Notes under the pieces: generated by a model
The model's input: the letters and a program-made list of their open reading frames with translations, nothing else
Told to the model about the DNA's origin: nothing
Database searches by the model: none
Shown here: positions 1-42,083 of the stretch, piece by piece
Layout: each line of letters opens with the position of its first letter
Numbering within the stretch: the stretch's first letter is position 1
Program-made: the position numbers and the translations under genes
Assembly (NCBI RefSeq): GCF_031769215.1
Contig: NW_026782401.1
Location: forward strand, 1,364,001-1,428,000
Direction of reading: 5' to 3'
From: Ylistrum balloti
Lineage: Eukaryota
DNA: 64,000 bases

Positions 1-1472
1 ATCATACAGTTGTTTCATTCTTTCTATGTCTCGTTAGTGATACTAATGGCATAACTTTTGAAGCCTAGGAGGCGACTGAGGTAAATCAAAAGCGATCGAG
101 AGAAACGTCTAAATCTAGATGGGGAGGTGCACAAATCCCTTACTTCAACAGATTATGCATACTAATCTCATATGATTCTTACATGCATGATCTTAAGATG
201 CGACCAACCTTAGAATTTTTGTCCAGTCTTTCTTACCTGAATACTCTTATTTGTTTATCCTATCTTCCTCGATACATTTGTACTACATTATGTTTACCTT
301 TGAGATTAACAGCTGCCCAAGTCAGAAAAGCTATTGGTTCTGTATCCTGGCTTTGACACACACAGTTCACGCAATGTTTTAACACGCCCCCAGCTTGACG
401 ATTAACATTTTATGGGGTGAAAGGACTATTATAATGATTCATTATATGATTTATTTAACGGATTGAGTTATCTTGCAATAGTGTCCAGGTTATGTCATTT
501 CAGTGTGACAACACTATAAAAGAGCCCGTTGTTTGTCCTATCATCCGTGGACACTGTCTTCAAAATAACATTGCTGCTGCTAGTACATATAGGACAATTA
601 TTCAAACAAGCATTAACCTTTTCTTTACTGCAGCATACCCACACTTCTCTATGATTTAACTTTCGATGCTCATATTCACAGAGTTAATTTTAACGCTGTA
701 GCTTTATATCAAAATTATGTGTCATAAGTGTTAATTGATAATAGCTAAACATTATTTAGAGATGTACATTGTACCATGCATTCAATAACTCCTCTTCGTG
801 ATTCAAAATAATCTGACTTATAAACATGTTCTGTGAGAATAACATGCTTAAGGTCACTCCCAGACATTCAAAGGAAAAGATTATATTCTAGCTAAGCCTG
901 ACATGAATAGGGGAAACCTGATCGCACCACAAAGCGTATTTTTATACACAATAATCATTTTCCGTTAGACAAAAAACTGAAACAAAAATCTATATGGACA
1001 AAGCGAGTCAGATTATCAATAAAGCTTGTATGATTCCGCATAATTGGTGACCGATCTGGGGTCTTATATCTCGCTAGTATTATCGGGTGACACAAAATGT
1101 CAGCGTCTGTTCCAGTAATACAGTATAAAAATGGCAGATACTGTCAGATATTTGACACAGGTCAGTCACTCTCGACAGGCCCGGCTGATTTTGTTGGAGT
1201 TTATACTACTACTTTAGCTGTGCTGTTTAAATACACAGGTCAGTTGAGGTAAGCATACATAAGTTATTTAATTTGCATCTGTCATGGGAGTTATATATAT
1301 GTTTTCTCATTTTGAATATTACCACGGAGTTCCATTATTAAAACAACATGGCGTCGAAGGGAGTGTTTACCGTTGAAGAACGAGCAACTGAAATTTGGAT
1401 TTGTCTTTTATCGACGTCACTGGAAGTGATCTGATTTCCACAGGTGCAACAAGTGATCATGTAATTTCTTCA

Positions 1473-1551
1473 CCACTGTTATGTACCCTGTAGATCCGAA
1501 TTTGTGTGAATTTAAGGCGACAAATTCGAATCTGCGGCGTTTTATAAAGTG
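1473..1551 (+). ncRNA. mir-10: mir-10 precursor hairpin (mature 5p 1484-1505/1506; 3p arm about 1521-1543)
   Basis: 1484-1505 reads TACCCTGTAGATCCGAATTTGT, the canonical bilaterian miR-10-5p. It pairs with CAAATTCGAATCTGCGGCGTTT (1521-1542) across a 14-nt loop, and the basal stem CCACT/AGTGG closes the fold. It lies upstream of Hox4 on the same strand, the established position of mir-10. Confidence 0.97.
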
Positions 1552-2514
1552 GTTGACTTTACAGCACGCAGAACTCTACAGAATTGTCCAACTGACTGGA
1601 AGGTGGATGCTATCTTTGACGCACTGATGTTACACACCGCAGGTAAAGATACCTTATCTAAATATTTCACCTTAAATGTTTCGGTTTAAATGAGAATTTG
1701 ATTTGTCGAACCAAAATGACCTTTATGACATGAAAGGCGTTAATTTAGAATAGAGCAATGACAATGAGAGCTAGAAGCGATAAATTTGAAAGAATTGCAA
1801 ACAAATGATAATGGCGTCAGTGTATGTGGAATACTTTATAGCGGCTATACCAGATAGCAGTAGCTTGTTCAGTGACCCTGAAGTGTGGGGTTTCAATGTC
1901 TCGTGGGATCGTCAAGGTCACAACGGTATTACAAATGCGGTATGTATATAATGAGTGTTGAATATACATACCACTCTACATAACTCGAGCTGCCACTTGC
2001 CCGTGAACTGTAATTTATTATCTTGTATGTACGTTATGCATGAAATGCCTGCTTCTAATGTGTAGCAACATATTAATGATATTGTGCAATGGAAACAAAT
2101 ATGTCGTACAGTCCTATGTACTGAACATGTCTTAGCATTAACAGCACTTGTTTATCAGATGTAGGAAGCTATGTTTAAACACTAGTTATTTTATCTTCAG
2201 AAATCACCGTGATATCAACTCTTACTACGTGCCCTAGATAAGTTGACTCATGATTTCATAACGAAGAGAATGTTGTGTAAAATGATATAAGGCTTCAAAA
2301 AATGTCAAAATATGTTTATCGAGCTCAGGATAACAAAGCTATCTCTATTTTTAATTCAGCTAATTATTGCGTTTCATATTTCGAATAAAATGTGACATGT
2401 TTACAGTTAAAGGCCAGCGTGTTCCGAAAGTATGTTATCAACTTATATATATGATATACTACTTGTATATTTATTTCACAGCAATTTGTATTTGTTTTCC
2501 TTTTCTCTCTCTCT

Positions 2515-2540
2515 CCCCCCCCCCCCCCCCCCCCCCCCCC
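2515..2540. repeat. poly-C tract (26 nt)
   Basis: Homopolymer C run preceded by a short (CT)n. Confidence 0.95.
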
Positions 2541-2921
2541 ACTCCCCTCTTATTTTTTGCATTAACTTTTACGTGATTTTTTTATAATCCTTCTCATCAA
2601 TTTGACGTGAAAATCTATATATGATCCAATGATAACTATTGCTTTTTCATTGAACACGTTTTATTAACCTTGCCATTAAAAAATAACTTCAATGTGATTA
2701 AAGTCTTCCTAAGTTCCGAACAAATTTCTTTATTTTTGTGAGACCCTTTGTTTGGTCCTTATGCCCACTGTCTTTTATTTTAACTTCACAATCATATGAC
2801 AATTTGATAGTCATAAATGTCTTAAGAAGGAATTGTTCATTTTGTTTAGCACTCGTGTCCGATAGTGATATTGTTACTGCCTTAGTTTGCGCTTTGTGAA
2901 CGCTGCATTTCATGTTCTTGA

Positions 2922-2960
2922 CTGACGAATCATAGATGGACGAAATAGATGTATGATGCA
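2922..2960 (+). ncRNA. degenerate hammerhead ribozyme copy
   Basis: CTGACGA-atcatagatggac-GAAA-tagatg-TA-tgatg. The core motifs are retained but stems I and II are disrupted relative to the copies at 3237-3412. Confidence 0.7.
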
Positions 2961-3236
2961 GTCACATCCATTGTTTGGCTTTACTTTATCAAAAGATGCT
3001 ATTTACTTCTGTCTCTTTTGTACAATCTTGACCTATATCTTAATACTAACGGTACCGTCGATGAATCAGAAGACCACTCGAGACCCATATGTATTTCCCT
3101 GTTAGTCATTTTGAATTTTATTTTAGATTTAAGTAATTATGGGGCTGCTGCACCTCCCCGTCTAGATTTTGACTTTTCTTTTGATTACTTTGGATTTTCC
3201 TTAGTCGCTTCCTGGGCTTGAAAATATAGGTTCATT

Positions 3237-3412
3237 GCATCACTGACGAGTTCGAGAGGGACGAAATAGCTGTATGATGTAACATCAATGACGAGTCCTA
3301 GAAGGACGAAATAGCTGTATGATGTAGCATCACTGACGAGTCCTAGAAGGACGAAACAACAGTATGATGTAACATCACTGACGAGTCCTAGAAGGACGAA
3401 ATAGCTGTATGA
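3237..3412 (+). ncRNA. tandem array of four 45-nt minimal type I hammerhead ribozymes
   Basis: Unit: (G/A)CATCA [stem I] CTGACGA [core] GTCC-TAGAA-GGAC [stem II] GAAA TAGCTG [stem III] TA / TGATGT [stem I']. Cores start at 3243, 3288 (C3-to-A variant), 3333 and 3378. Predicted GUA cleavage follows 3274, 3319, 3364 and 3409. Confidence 0.9.
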
Positions 3413-4425
3413 ATGGTTTGGCTCTACTGTATATCACTCTAAATTATATGCCTTTTGTACGATCCTCATCGATATTCAGTTGGAGGCTAGTGTACAGGTT
3501 GGTGTCATATTGTATTGATAGGAAATATCTAGCTCTCTATCCCCAATCCCGTTTAAGATAGTGATATTGTTTGTTGCCTGAATTGTGATTTATTCGTCAA
3601 TCATTGTGCTGAGTATTTATACATTTTGCTCAAATTAAAGTGGTGTTCCTCAGGGAAAGAAAATACACACAATTTGTCATTCCACATTATGTTATCACAA
3701 TACGTTTTTCATTCTGATATCTATAACATATGCGTTACTACTATAACGATACAATTTTTCATGTCATAAAAACATTATCAAAGACAATGCTAATGAGACT
3801 TATTTTAAGACATACATCAAATGTTAACATATTCATGATAGATATACTAGTATAACTTCACCAAATTCAATTCCAAAGTTTATTTTGGAGGAAAGATTGA
3901 ACTGCAATAAAAAAATGTCACCAGGTAAAGTATTACCGTTTTAGTTTATTGAAAACGAAAATCTGCAATTCGTCATACATTGTATGTGATACTGTCACGA
4001 TGCTTTATGTAATCCAGGAAACATGTCAACATTAGTCTAGGTCAAACTGAGGGAACGAATTTGAAATCATTACCGCCACTGAAGGCTTGCATAAGGTTAT
4101 GACGATCGTATTATTGCGTCAGTGTAGGTAAGCTTGCTTCATTTGGAAATATGGTGGAAACGACAACAGATTGAATGGATCATATTTGCTGATGGTAAAG
4201 AAAATTTAAAGTAAATTTCCTAGCTGTTAGCTGGTCAATTACTGATAACATTGGTTGCATATTAACATGATATGACCTATATTTTATATGTGCAGTGTAT
4301 TTTGATATCAATTTATGACTTGTCCATTACCACCGTTCAAAACGAAAGCAAATAGGTTATATTAACACAAAAGTTACATAATGTATTCCTTTAATGAAGA
4401 ATATTTCATAAATATTTCCAAAATA

Positions 4426-5664
4426 CCATTTTCCGCGTAAAACTTTGATATGCCGTTTTCCGCGTTAAACTTTGATATGTCCGTTTTCCGCGTTAATCTT
4501 TGATATGTCCGTTTTCCGCGTAAAACTTCGATATGCCCGTTTTCCGCGTGAAACTTTGATATGCCCGTTTTCCGCGTTAAACTTTGATATGTCCGTTTTC
4601 CGCGTTAATCTTTGATATGTCCGTTTTCCGCGTTAATCTTTGATATGTCCGTTTTCCGCGTAAAACTTCGATATGCCCGTTTTCCGCGTGAAACTTTGAT
4701 ATGCCCGTTTTCCGCTTTAAACTTCGATATGCCCGTTTTCCGCGTTAAACTTTGATATGCCCGTTTTCCGCGTTAAACTTCGATATGCCCGTTTTCCGCG
4801 TGAAACTTTGATATGCCCGTTTTCCGCTTTAAACTTCGATATGTTTTCCCGTTTTCCGCGTTTTCCGCGTTAAAATATGTCCGTTTTCCGCGTTAAACTT
4901 TGATATGCCCGTTTTCCGCGTTAAACTTCGATATGCCCGTTTTCCGCGTTTAACTTTGATATGCCCGTTTTCCGCGTTAAACTTTGATATGTCCATTTTC
5001 CGCGTTAAACTTTGATATGCCCGTTTTTTAAACCGATATGCCCGTTTTCCGCGTTTAACTTTGATATGTCCGTTTTCCGCGTTAAACTTTGATAAAACTT
5101 CGATATGCCCGTTTTCCGCGTTAAACTTTGATATGCCCGTTTTCCGCGTTAAACTTCGATATGCCCGTTTTCCGCGAAACTTTTATGCCCGTTTTCCGCT
5201 TTAAACTTCGATATGCCCGTTTTCCGCGTTAAACTTTGATATGCCCGTTTTCCGCTTTAAACTTCGATATGCCCGTTTTCCGCGTTAAACTTCGATATGT
5301 CCGTTTTCCGCGTTAAACTTTGATATGCCCGTTTTCCGCGTTAAACTTCGATATGCCCGTTTTCCGCGTGAAACTTTGATATGCCCGTTTTCCGCTTTAA
5401 ACTTCGATATGCCCGTTTTCCGCGTTAAACTTCGATATGTCCATTTTCCGCGTTAAACTTTGATATGCCCGTTTTCCGCGTTAAACTTCGATATGCCCGT
5501 TTTCCGCGTTTAACTTTGATATGTCCGTTTTCCGCGTTAAACTTTGATATGTCCGTTTTCCGCGTAAAACTTCGATATGCCCGTTTCTCGCGTTAAACTT
5601 TGATATGCCCGTTTTCCGCGTTAAACTTCGATATGCCCGTTTTCCGCGTTAAACTTTGATATGC
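4426..5664. repeat. 28-bp minisatellite, about 44 copies
   Basis: Unit GATATGCCCGTTTTCCGCGTTAAACTT(T/C), period 28 (ATG at 4561 and 4589), with a few truncated units. Confidence 0.97.
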
Positions 5665-5758
5665 TGTCTAAGGGTTAGCATTTCATCACATAGGTTAAAG
5701 CAACTGAATTTAAAAAATAGTAATGACGCTTTTTTTCGCTTTCTTTTTCTTCAATACA

Positions 5759-5970
5759 CTTACCCAGACACCTATCGTGTCCTTTCTGTACTGTCCAGTC
5801 ATAGAAAAAGGGCAAAGGTGCAGCAAAATATTTATGTCTGCATTACCTTTTTAATATTTATAAATCGGTACAATTACCCAGACACCTATCATGTCCTTTC
5901 TGTACTGTCCAGCCCAAGAAAAAGAGCAAATGTGCAGCGAAATATCTATTTGAATATTTATAAATGATCG
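5759..5970. repeat. tandem duplication, period about 114 bp
   Basis: TTACCCAGACACCTATC(G/A)TGTCCTTTCTGTACTGTCCAG occurs at about 5760 and 5874, each followed by similar sequence. Confidence 0.9.
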
Positions 5971-7129
5971 GATGAATTGTAATACTGTACTAGAATGACA
6001 CTATCATCTGCTAATTATAAAACAAGTATTCTACACTAGAATTTGATCTGAAAGTTTCACGAAATAGACGCGCAGGAGCTGTCTTTTTTATGTTTCTATG
6101 GACGTTGTGACCTACTGTGCTAGGATAGTTCAGTCTACAGACAGTGATTTATTGTATTAAGGTGGTGTTTCGTGTACATGCTTAGCAACTGAGGAATGCT
6201 TACCTTTAACTTTTTGAAAATGAATAATAAACAGAAAAAAGAATTTATGGAATGCTTGCTCTTTCTGTTTTCACGTGACCACATACATGCTTCTATCCGT
6301 ATGACAGATTCTTTTAGTTTTAACTTTTTACACTAGAACTTAATTATGTTATTAACAGATTGGTGCTTCGAGAAAAAATGCGATATTAGTAATGTGTCCT
6401 CATTAATTAAGTGTGAATTAGATGCATATAAATCGAGTACAGGGGTGATACAGAAGTAGGTCTCCTGCACCACAAGTGACTGTGACGTCATCGATCAAAT
6501 TACGAAAGGAAAGCAACTCACTAACGATTGGGAACCTGTTTATACACAAAATGGACACAGAAATCTGTAGTGTCCTGTGGCAAAATAACACAAGGATCGA
6601 TCGTAATTGGCAATGTTTATCGTAATTGGACGTTTATCAAGCTATATTAGATTAGGATGAGACACCAATTTTAAACATTAAACCAAAATAAAATTTACAG
6701 AGTTTCTCTCCTCAGGCAAAACGACCGGACCACAAACAGTTCACTCCCACTAAATAATTCCATGGCTTTCTGTAGGTGTAGCAATCGATTTTCGGAAACA
6801 CTTTCGTATGGTAAGAAATCATGTGTATTCTGATATCGCATAAAGCCATTCGTCTGGCATACAGTTACAATACATTAACGAATTTCATTGATTTTGAGTT
6901 ATGATATTACCAGGTAAAATAAATCAGCGGAGCGGTGTTCATTGTATTTAGGGCTGACAATTTCATCCTTTTGTCAAATGACCGTTGATCGTTGATAATT
7001 TTGGTATACTATCCGAAAGCAAATGCATAGTAAAACAGTATCAATGTCACTTAAAACGTATCCTCATATTGGTCAATGGATGATAGTTAGAAAAAAAGCT
7101 TGTCAACACAATCATAATCCAACTCAAAT

Positions 7130-7240
7130 CCATTAAAACTAAGGAAAACGTGAACAACAAGAAAGATTGAAATTAGAAAAGCACACGGAGAATAAGACCA
7201 GGTGTTCCTGAAGAGTAAGCGTCTTCCGTTCGATTATATT
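7130..7240 (-). mobile_element. Penelope-like element terminal (pLTR-type) remnant
   Basis: GAGAATAAGACCAGGTGTTCCTGAAGAGTAAGC is homologous to copies at about 17130 and 47270 and to the reverse complement at about 48250. The 47 kb copy is contiguous with a Penelope-type RT C-terminal fragment. Confidence 0.5.
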
Positions 7241-7799
7241 TAGATGTTTTTTAAACATATATGACATAATTTATACCATCATACCAGTACTAGGCACGGA
7301 TTGTAAAATATATAACACCGCCAGTTGTTATAGATCGCCACCAAAATGGGTGCCATTCACATTCATATGTTATCTGAGTGATTACGTGGACAGTTCTATT
7401 CTCTTTAAGTGGAAATGAAGGAAACCTAATACTTTTCTCCAAATACCCCTCACCTAGATCTTTAAATCACAGGAGTTTTTACTTACTTCATATCAACATA
7501 CACGTTCTCCCACAATTATATATAGTGTAGCTCGTAGTACTGAGCTTTTTGGAATTCGTCAACTAATGAGGAATATTGCAAGGTTTTGAAAATTGTCTTG
7601 GTCTTCAACAAAGAATCTTGAGAAATATTGAAATTAAAAAAAAATCATATATATATATGGATATGCCATGTGGTTTCACTACCTTTACCTCGGTTCATTT
7701 TGGTAATGTAGAAATACATTTAAATGTCATAAGACGTTTTTATGCGGGTCCTCAATGAAAAGGAGGCTTATCCCACTTAAACGCGTGGCTTTTTATCTA

Positions 7800-8175
7800 T
7801 CAAGCTAGCATAGGGTGGTGAAACTCCGACAAACGTTCATCATAATGGAACTCACAATACCAATGAAAGGAAAGACACAAAAAGGAAGAGCGATAGTATG
7901 AAGGATGCAGGGATAAGGGATGGATTGTGTGACTGTTATTCCAGCTAGGTGAGCAAGCTCCTAAAACATCTGAAATTTGTGTGGAAGGATGAAGCAGCAG
8001 CCTTGCGAAAAGTGGATGCAGCAGCGAAAAACAAACAGTATGCTGCATATGGCACCGTCGGAGCCCCGAATAGTTTAAATCTGGCTTTCTAACAAGGAGA
8101 TGGTGTGGTTCAGTGTTGAAACATATAACGGAAGTCGGGAACTAACTGAACTACTTGATAAAGAAGGAACAGACT
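7800..8175 (+). mobile_element. decayed 3' end of an RLE-type (HERO/NeSL-like) non-LTR retrotransposon
   Basis: Frameshifted peptides IIMELTIP (7839-7862), HKKEER*YEGCRDKGW (to 7923), LLKHLKFV...ALRKVDAAA and VCCIWHRR (about 8038-8061) are collinear with the restriction-like endonuclease C-terminus pattern ELTVPWE...HERKKAKY...C..KGW...AAE.AS.WLW.KR. Confidence 0.7.
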
Positions 8176-8665
8176 ATGGAGCAACGAGGAGAAAGCAAAT
8201 CAAACGAAACGTTTTACACAGGAAATACAACGAGGAGAAAGCAAATCAAAGGAACAGATATACACAGGAAATACAACGAGGAGAAAGCAAATCAAACGAA
8301 CGGATATACACAGGAAATACAACGAGAGCAGAAAGCAAATCAAACGAACAGTTTTACACAGGAAATACAACGAGAGGAGAAAGCAAATCAAACGAACAGA
8401 TATACACAGGAAATACAACGAGAGGAGAAAGCAAATCAAACGAACAGTTATACACAGGAAATACAACGAGAGGAGAAAGCAAATCAAACGAACAGTTATA
8501 CACAGGAAATACAACGAGAGGAGAAAGCAAATCAAACGAACAGTTATACACAGGAAATACAACGAGAGGAGAAAGCAAATCAAACGAACAGTTTTACACA
8601 GGAAATACAACGAGGAGAAAGCAAATCAAACGAACAGTTTTACACAGGAAATACAACGAGAACAA
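8176..8665. repeat. 48-bp minisatellite, about 10 copies (some 46-bp units)
   Basis: Unit GCAAATCAAACGAACAGTTATACACAGGAAATACAACGAGAGGAGAAA. It explains the repetitive 16-aa ORFs on both strands. Confidence 0.97.
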
Positions 8666-8899
8666 ATTGTTTACGATCATCTTAATCCAAATGTCTTCGT
8701 TTTCTTTTAGAACTCTCAATCTTAATCTATCTTTTCAAATCTGAAATCTTAAACTATGAAAAGCGCACAAAACTTCCACTTCTGTAAAGTAGAAATAGTA
8801 AAAGTATTTCTTCAGGCCACATCTTAACTTTACACAGCCTAACACAAGGTTTCATTGATTACACCTTCACCCAAACTGAAGAATACAGGTTGAGATTCG

Positions 8900-9300
8900 T
8901 GAAGATATCCCAGTATCTTCTACCCTGAAATGACATGTATATGTATGCATTCTATACGATATCTTATTGTAAGGTCTGGAGTCCAATTACGATGTTTAGT
9001 TTCAGTACAAATATGGGTGCCTTTAGAAATGATCATTAGAAATCGTTTGATTTTTAATTGAGTTAAATCAAATTCCTCAGTTCGGTGATGATGCAGAATC
9101 ACGTTATCTTCCTTGTCCATTTTGGATTTGATCATTCACATAATACGCCTCCCTTTTCCATTATCGTTGTCATGTAGTTCTTTGTTATGGCATGGCTTGT
9201 GAAAGTCATCTTACAAAAATGTGCATCTACATTGTGTTTAAATAAAAACATCATGTAACCACAAAATAGGGCAGTCAACCCATGTAGTGATGTTTGACTT
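8900..9300 (-). mobile_element. possible decayed Penelope-like ORF fragment
   Basis: Minus-strand peptide IISKGTHICTETKHRNW resembles the LISKGPK(F/Y)REP..INW motif I associate with mollusc Penelope-like ORFs. Many stops and frameshifts; unverified. Confidence 0.3.
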
Positions 9301-14111: not shown

Positions 14112-14488
14112 NNNNNNNNNNNNNNNNNNNNNNNNNNNNNNNNNNNNNNNNNNNNNNNNNNNNNNNNNNNNNNNNNNNNNNNNNNNNNNNNNNNNNNNNN
14201 NNNNNNNNNNNNNNNNNNNNNNNNNNNNNNNNNNNNNNNNNNNNNNNNNNNNNNNNNNNNNNNNNNNNNNNNNNNNNNNNNNNNNNNNNNNNNNNNNNNN
14301 NNNNNNNNNNNNNNNNNNNNNNNNNNNNNNNNNNNNNNNNNNNNNNNNNNNNNNNNNNNNNNNNNNNNNNNNNNNNNNNNNNNNNNNNNNNNNNNNNNNN
14401 NNNNNNNNNNNNNNNNNNNNNNNNNNNNNNNNNNNNNNNNNNNNNNNNNNNNNNNNNNNNNNNNNNNNNNNNNNNNNNNNNNNNNNNN
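14112..14488. other. assembly gap (377 N)
   Basis: Run of N characters. Confidence 1.
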
Positions 14489-41766: not shown

Positions 41767-42083
41767 GAAACAACAATATTATATCAGAATCCAAAAGAAA
41801 CAGGACAGCTTACACAAGACACCAGATACTCGAATTGGAGAAGGAATTCCACTTCAACAGATACCTTACGAGGAGAAGACGTATAGAAATAGCTCATACA
41901 CTGTGTTTATCTGAGAGACAAATTAAAATCTGGTTTCAAAACAGAAGAATGAAATGGAAGAAAGAACACAAATTGCCAAATACGAAAACACGACTTATGG
42001 ACGCCACAAACTCACCTCTGGAGCCATCACATCACCATTTTGTTCACAGTATGGCCGCACTTGCAGAGTTAACACCTATCTAG
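41767..42083 (+). CDS. Hox4: Hox4/Deformed homeobox protein, coding exon 2 (homeodomain 41790-41969)
   Basis: [60 protein letters not shown] followed by the PG4-diagnostic KLPNTK. Stop TAG at 42081-42083. Spliced CDS is 789 nt (262 aa). Confidence 0.98.

Follow-up and report, generated by a model that had tools for sequence, protein, structure and literature searches.

A four-unit array of 45-nt hammerhead ribozymes as a probable minisatellite-like swelling inside a retrozyme-like element of a bivalve genome

The array of four head-to-tail 45-nt hammerhead ribozyme (HHR) units at positions 3237-3412 of the window, the whole 64,000-nt stretch of Ylistrum balloti DNA that was analysed, is, judged from its sequence, a small swelling, decayed in part, within a single copy of a mobile element that is common in this bivalve genome. 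Very probably the region from ~2873 to 3470 is one old non-autonomous retrozyme-like insertion of more than unit length, whose second HHR module was locally amplified to four units by minisatellite-like growth. The insertion would be laid out as hammerhead, right arm, middle, left arm, hammerhead and right arm, with a monomer of 321 nt here and of ~390 nt elsewhere, and it is the second hammerhead module of this copy that would have been amplified in place to the four 45-nt units. Each unit would be a metazoan-type hammerhead whose 'loop 1' cargo is down to 3 nt, so that stem I forms a closed hairpin of 5 bp from one unit to the next, while the 8-nt stem III segment may pair with that of the next unit to complete a type III hammerhead across each junction. 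The array probably began with a single duplication of the ribozyme module or, equivalently, with a deletion of the cargo between two tandem ribozymes. Later expansion, homogenisation and decay would have proceeded as in minisatellite DNA, by unequal exchange or slippage, whether the ribozyme was working or not. The parts of the insertion and of the array, in window coordinates, are the following:

2873-2916 (+), probable diverged 3' half of the left arm, at the 5' end of the insertion; weak alignment
2917-2962 (+), degenerate upstream hammerhead that differs from the family unit at 8 positions and lacks the 5' strand of stem I and G10.1
2963-3031 (+), right arm of the upstream hammerhead, homologous to 3413-3468
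3032-3126 (+), middle of the monomer, weakly similar to other copies and placed by the tandem layout seen elsewhere
3127-3236 (+), left arm, directly upstream of the HHR array; dispersed repeat
3237-3412 (+), HHR array, 45-nt units head to tail, 3.9 copies; cleavage predicted after 3274, 3319, 3364 and 3409
3282-3326 (+), unit 2 of the array, C3 changed to A at 3288
3327-3371 (+), unit 3 of the array, stem III non-palindromic
last unit of the array (+), unit 4, stem I cut short
3413-3468, end approximate (+), right arm and fixed 3' end of the element, with a ~13-nt deletion just after the last unit relative to other copies

The initial annotation had described four head-to-tail 45-nt hammerhead units in the array, and its account of their number, order and parts is borne out by direct reading. 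Tandem Repeats Finder assigns to 3238-3412 a period of 45, 3.9 copies and 90% matches. The 5' part of a unit consists of the 5' strand of stem I, (G/A)CAUCA, the core CUGACGA and stem II, GUCC-UAGAA-GGAC, and the 3' part continues with GAA, A15.1, a 6-nt segment, U16.1, A17, the 3' strand of stem I (UGAUG) and a final 3 nt, UAA or UAG. The conserved HHR core (C3-U4-G5-A6-N7-G8-A9, G12-A13-A14, the A15.1-U16.1 pair and H17) is complete in units 1, 3 and 4 and incomplete in unit 2. Three helices surround the core, and helix II is closed by G10.1-C11.1. Stem I has 6 bp in units 1-3, and stem II has 4 bp in all units, including unit 1, where it reads GUUC-GAGAG-GGAC and the 4 bp are kept with one G.U pair. 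The condition of the units is also as had been described. Units 1 and 3 combine an intact core with a 6-bp stem I; the core of unit 2, with C3 changed to A, is by prediction dead; and unit 4 has an intact core with a weak stem I, of 3 bp or of 5 bp with a bulge, because of the ~13-nt deletion in the right arm.

Stem III has 2 bp inside a unit, and the pairing between units that had been proposed is possible in the window. Three of the units (1, 2 and 4) have UAGCUG as the 6-nt segment, with the palindrome noted before, whereas unit 3 has CAACAG. The stem III shared by units 1 and 2 can reach 8 bp with two G.U pairs, and the segment of unit 3 pairs imperfectly with those of the neighbouring units. 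The GAAA...GUA blocks end at 3274, 3319, 3364 and 3409, exactly where cleavage had been predicted. In the MFE fold of the array, units 1 and 2 form a three-way junction, and the core inside it is that of unit 2. Since this core is dead, the best-folded inter-unit junction, the one at site 3274, would be disabled as well. If the window array is transcribed, two or three of its four predicted sites could be cut at best.

The search with Rfam hammerhead models that the initial annotation had proposed gives a divided answer, in which the family is recognised while the window units fall short of the gathering cut-offs. The relevant models belong to clan CL00010 and have gathering cut-offs of 34 (RF00163, type I) and 48.5 (RF00008, type III). 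At gathering thresholds, the whole window has no match. In E-value mode, Hammerhead_3 (type III) matches 3312-3362 with 35.8 bits (E 2.8e-6), below its cut-off of 48.5, and Hammerhead_1 (type I) matches 3237-3280 with 24.2 bits and 3372-3414 with 22.1 bits, both below its cut-off of 34. The family consensus unit at other loci scores 35.8 bits on RF00163, above the cut-off, and two adjacent consensus units, over a 51-nt stretch across the junction, score 50.3 bits on RF00008, again above the cut-off. In this type III register the 3' strand of stem I of one unit and the 5' strand of the next form a closed 5-bp hairpin with a 3-nt loop. In the family, the stem III segment of 8 nt is a perfect palindrome, ACAGCUGU, and in the window it reads AUAGCUGU; all eight inter-unit stem III pairs are possible in 487 of the 619 adjacent unit pairs of the family sample. 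A search for compensatory covariation in 384 distinct units found 0-2 double compensated changes per pair against 20-65 broken pairs. With next to no covariation, as for a family too young and decaying, the hammerhead case rests on the match to the known consensus, by which the window units are metazoan type I motifs whose short, palindromic stem III is predicted to pair between units. Metazoan type I HHRs have a helix III of 1-2 bp with a palindromic loop and are thought to act as dimers (PMC4209133).

That the array is a chance resemblance or an assembly artefact is extremely improbable. The core-plus-stem-II pattern has five matches in the 64-kb window, the fifth being the degenerate HHR at 2917-2962, against none expected from 100 shuffles, and the E-value of 2.8e-6 and the thousands of family members described below likewise speak against chance. 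An artefact of assembly, which the initial annotation had raised as a possible objection to its own reading, is unlikely because 81-88% of the sampled 31-letter words of 3100-3480 are present in the four DNA runs X1-X4, with flanks at single-copy depth; the point in favour of such an artefact is that no single contig among those listed spans the whole stretch. Depth in one DNA run from this organism is 11-16 on the flanks, whereas the summed depth on the units reaches millions, a figure that gives no copy number but fits a very abundant repeat.

The array is set in phase between two arms that are themselves repeated through the genome. A genome search gave at least 1,990 candidate places for the left arm (3127-3236, 110 nt), with 86-92% identity. 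The right arm is also dispersed, with a 94% match of 3413-3447 to many loci, and the usual right-arm sequence is found in loose ends of DNA contigs. The initial annotation had taken the unit to be free of cargo. Within the array the repeat unit is indeed the ribozyme only, but the locus as a whole has host arms at 3127-3236 and 3413-~3468 and a degenerate HHR 321 nt upstream, the nominal predicted cleavage site of which, after 2953, lies 321 nt before 3274. Aligned copies with a single hammerhead have a fixed 3' end (...TTTTGTACAATCTT) and variable 5' ends. In the longest copies the right arm is found again upstream of the left arm, and at C248 the whole hammerhead is found there too, which is a tandem layout. 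The distance between hammerheads, 321 nt in the window and ~390 nt at C248, is within the 150-450 bp range of retrozymes, whereas the 45-nt array is far outside it.

As in retrozymes, the element is non-coding and low in GC (35-44%), with no LTR, PBS or PPT. It has no terminal repeats beyond the tandem layout, and the one ORF in it, at 2949-3221, is mechanical and 90 aa long. The 6-nt GATATT at 2867-2872 and 3471-3476, the only 6-mer common to both flanks, may be a target-site duplication or a chance match. The insertion is not recent, as its arms share ~88-90% identity with other copies. It is possible that ~2873-3470 holds two separate insertions rather than one, in favour of which is the poor alignment of the middle, 3032-3126, with other copies; this part also has no match in the genome search. 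A single old insertion of tandem layout is the reading adopted here. An origin of the window copy as a Penelope-like pLTR was considered and set aside, as helix II has 4 bp without a bulge, where pLTR min-HHRs have 6-8 bp and a bulged base, and no long RT-like ORF lies in window positions 1-9000. There are five ORFs of at least 90 aa in that interval, and a Pfam comparison of two of them gave no match to an RT or an endonuclease. Close to the element are a run of 26 C residues at 2515-2540 and a 27-nt tandem repeat of 2.6 copies at 4429-4500.

The genome-wide count that the initial annotation had suggested places the array in a very large family. The exact 27-nt unit-to-unit junction, which exists in the tandem arrangement only, occurs 4,885 times in the 648-Mb assembly and the reversed control 0 times; for the junction from HHR to right arm, the count is 2,703 when up to 3 mismatches are allowed, again with 0 for the control. 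At other loci, identical arms flank 1, 2, 4, 5, 7, 8, 17 or 28 HHR units in phase, and the number of units per element copy elsewhere ranges from 1 to more than 100, the longest arrays being ~10 kb (contig C564). Among 34 arrays of at least 4 units, 28 keep at least one arm in phase: both arms are kept in 13, the left only in 8 and the right only in 7, and 6 have neither. The family statistics cover 54 segments, 182 kb and 770 units. Part of the segments were chosen by similarity to the array or by Rfam model, the two sets being analysed separately for variant counts, and the units were found by a Hamming-distance scan, which misses units with indels. The core and the stems are fully intact in 421 of the 770 units (55%). 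The four-unit, partly decayed copy in the window is a minor member of this family and adds little of its own. Two further arrays are of note. At G000:C16:259372-259524 the junction matches are spaced 42 nt rather than 45, so that a 42-nt variant unit forms an array of its own, and at G000:C544:1353382-1354412, on the contig of the window and ~10 kb before it, a longer array of ~23 units of 45 nt lies on the opposite (-) strand, likewise in the neighbourhood of the Hox cluster.

The way in which such arrays grow is recorded in the variants that their units share. The mean distance between units is 2.63 differences within arrays and 5.87 between arrays. Inactivating variants have become common to the units of particular loci:

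C318, G12A plus H17G, in 4 of 5 units
C446, A14G, in 17 of 18 units
C979, U16.1G, in 10 of 16 units
C341, A14U, in 5 of 7 units

Since locus-specific variants, dead cores among them, have been amplified, growth seems to have taken place mainly as that of ordinary repeat DNA and not through 45-nt RNA intermediates. The amplification of dead units would be predicted by unequal exchange or slippage and not by a process that depends on self-cleavage, and so argues for the former. Similarity between units shows no clear dependence on lag, either as a higher-order 90-nt repeat or as an effect of neighbours.

These observations bear on the proposal that the array is a stand-alone, cargo-free, self-cleaving satellite, the transcripts of which would be cut to 45-nt RNAs with 5'-OH and 2',3'-cyclic phosphate ends that may circularise. 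The proposal has in its favour that the repeat unit inside the arrays is the ribozyme only, that the family consensus is above the Rfam thresholds in two registers, that the stem III of a unit can be completed by its neighbour, and that tandem 49-nt units are present in contigs of runs guessed to be RNA from organisms C and F. It is nevertheless improbable, because the window array is embedded in phase in a cargo-bearing host element, its units are below the Rfam thresholds and include one dead core, and dead units have been amplified in arrays elsewhere. In addition, the minimal metazoan hammerheads cleave poorly in vitro (PMC4209133), and the sequencing-run search for the window stretch gave, among the runs listed, no holder on record as RNA. 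The four runs aligned to the locus are all contigs and carry no RNA ends, strand or expression level.

Growth as minisatellite DNA inside a host element, the favoured reading, leaves room for a past contribution of the ribozyme. Variant events at strict core positions are ~25% rarer than expected (81 versus 108, p about 0.001), mostly at core adenines, which points to some selection for an intact ribozyme somewhere in the history of the family. This modest deficit would also be in keeping with an origin of the units at the RNA level, in which a retrozyme circular RNA shed its cargo when the polymerase jumped across the base of stem I, and rolling-circle reverse transcription of the tiny circle, or of transcripts with arrays, was followed by insertion through the machinery of a Penelope-like element. 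In favour of such a route, the unit equals a retrozyme monomer with loop 1 cut to 3 nt, and the 7 of 34 arrays with the right arm only would fit 5'-truncated retrotransposition of array-bearing elements, so that not all growth need be in situ. Yet the locus-specific common variants and the dead cores in arrays can be explained without an RNA step, most arrays retain the left arm, alone or with the right, and a 45-nt circle would be far smaller than the described retrozyme RNAs, whose monomers are ~170-400 nt (PMC7229834). Taken with the evidence for growth as DNA, a passage through RNA appears quite unlikely.

A variant of the unit in related organisms adds to the evidence on its origin. Tandem units of 49 nt, in contigs of runs that are guessed to be RNA and do not count as evidence of transcription, were aligned to window 3280-3412 from organism C (runs X17 and X20) and organism F (X19). 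Their stem I loop is longer by four letters, ...GUAUGAUG-UCCCUAA-CAUCACUGA..., and these letters match the end of the left arm. The 49-nt TCCC variant has 0 matches in the present genome, and a metagenome scan for a junction with a 3-7 nt loop also gave 0 matches. Both units can be read, by comparison with the host element, as a retrozyme monomer with its cargo reduced to 3 nt in the 45-nt unit or to 7 nt in the 49-nt unit. The difference between their junctions suggests either a second event of cargo loss or a later, lineage-specific change of 4 nt. The 49-nt junction, which keeps 7 nt of the left arm and is absent from this genome, would suggest recurrent events at the foot of stem I, a further point for the RNA-level origin considered above. 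A still broader proposal is that the arrays are transcribed, that type III hammerheads folded from neighbouring units cut the transcripts into 45- or 90-nt RNAs which circularise and can serve as rolling-circle templates, and that this arose more than once in scallops, with the 45-nt junction here and the 49-nt junction in related species as the outcome. This proposal is given little credence, but if it were true these would be the smallest known ribozyme-bearing circular RNAs ('mini-retrozymes'), a cargo-deleted parasite of a retrozyme. The duplicated and locally amplified module of a host element is the account that is carried forward.

The initial annotation had seen in the array a minimal satellite inside a Hox cluster. 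The setting is upheld by two features on the strand of the array, and a stand-alone satellite peculiar to this locus is not supported, with arms and junctions dispersed in thousands. A mir-10 precursor hairpin is found at window 1477-1550 (+), 1.7 kb upstream of the array and in its orientation. Its score on RF00104, 39.9 bits with E 3.4e-8, falls short of the gathering cut-off (47.5), but its 5' arm reads UACCCUGUAGAUCCGAAUUUGUG, which we take to be the canonical mature miR-10 sequence. A Hox-type homeodomain exon is found at ~41793-41963 (+), on the strand of mir-10, with 86 bits and E 1.5e-24 for the Pfam Homeodomain. This arrangement allows the idea of an exapted role, in which the ribozymes, in sense orientation and 1.7 kb beyond mir-10, would cleave the primary transcript of mir-10 or of the Hox cluster and help to define its 3' end, and conserved intronic hammerheads do have host roles in amniotes (PMC7229834, PMC3088659). 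The window copy, however, is decayed and its element is one of thousands of dispersed copies, which makes the Hox location look incidental and a host role here highly unlikely. The window also contains an N run at 14112-14488 and an ORF of 214 aa at 8100-8744 (+) with a weak, sub-threshold match to the DM9 repeat (17.5 bits versus 26.2).

Animal hammerhead repeats are understood as retrozymes, the monomers of which, a few hundred bases long, circulate as circular RNAs. A repeat unit that consists of the ribozyme only marks the lower size limit of hammerhead-bearing elements, and its anatomy indicates that a type I module can become a chain of type III ribozymes simply by loss of its cargo. Active units would provide a natural system of very small self-processing RNAs, and inactive ones would be a clear example of a functional RNA module turned into minisatellite DNA. 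There is also a caution for genome surveys, that thousands of bivalve hammerhead matches are products of repeat decay. No description of a spacer-less or 45-nt hammerhead repeat, or of the sequence of the unit, was found in a literature search that covered few subscription journals. The hammerhead repeats described in animals have monomers of ~150-450 nt (PMC7229834, PMC4209133, PMC3088659, bioRxiv 10.64898/2026.07.22.740005).

Among known systems, the Penelope-like element (PLE) min-HHRs resemble the present family in being very numerous in invertebrate genomes, in their palindromic stem III region and in their presumed action as dimers (PMC4209133). Those ribozymes have a helix II of 7-8 bp, a helix I of 4-5 bp and no or a minimal helix III, and are located in pLTRs that adjoin an ORF for RT/GIY-YIG (PMC4209133). 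The hammerheads of newt satellite 2, Dolichopoda pDo500 and Schistosoma Sm-alpha are likewise found in tandem or dispersed animal repeats, with a weak stem III that implies double-hammerhead action. Their units, in contrast, are ~330-500 nt long and comprise one ribozyme with non-ribozyme sequence, and none is ribozyme-only. Across the unit junction the structure comes closer to the type III HHRs of viroids and plant retrozymes (RF00008), with 7-8 bp in stem III, 4 bp in stem II and a stem I of 5 bp closed by a 3-nt loop. Unlike in those ribozymes, the fold needs two adjacent copies of a unit derived from type I, and the junctions in the window reach at most 35.8 bits. As each stem III segment can serve either the upstream or the downstream ribozyme, neighbouring sites would compete.

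The closest relatives are the non-LTR retrozymes of bivalves, for example of Mytilus galloprovincialis, in which repeats of 350-390 bp carry ~5,000 type I HHRs (Cervera and de la Pena 2020, PMC7229834). The two bivalve elements share the thousands of type I HHRs, the tandem or longer than unit-length repeats of 320-390 nt, the low GC and the lack of ORF, LTR and PBS, as well as a hammerhead in which helix I has 6 bp, helix II has 4 bp and helix III is palindromic and very short (2 bp). In this comparison the present element is known from its sequence and not as a circular RNA. The difference is that here the HHR module itself has become tandem, with 3 nt between units, a period of 45 and 4 to more than 100 units. 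The element would thus be a retrozyme whose ribozyme module became a minisatellite, of a retrozyme kind that is known and with a ribozyme-only repeat unit that appears to be new.
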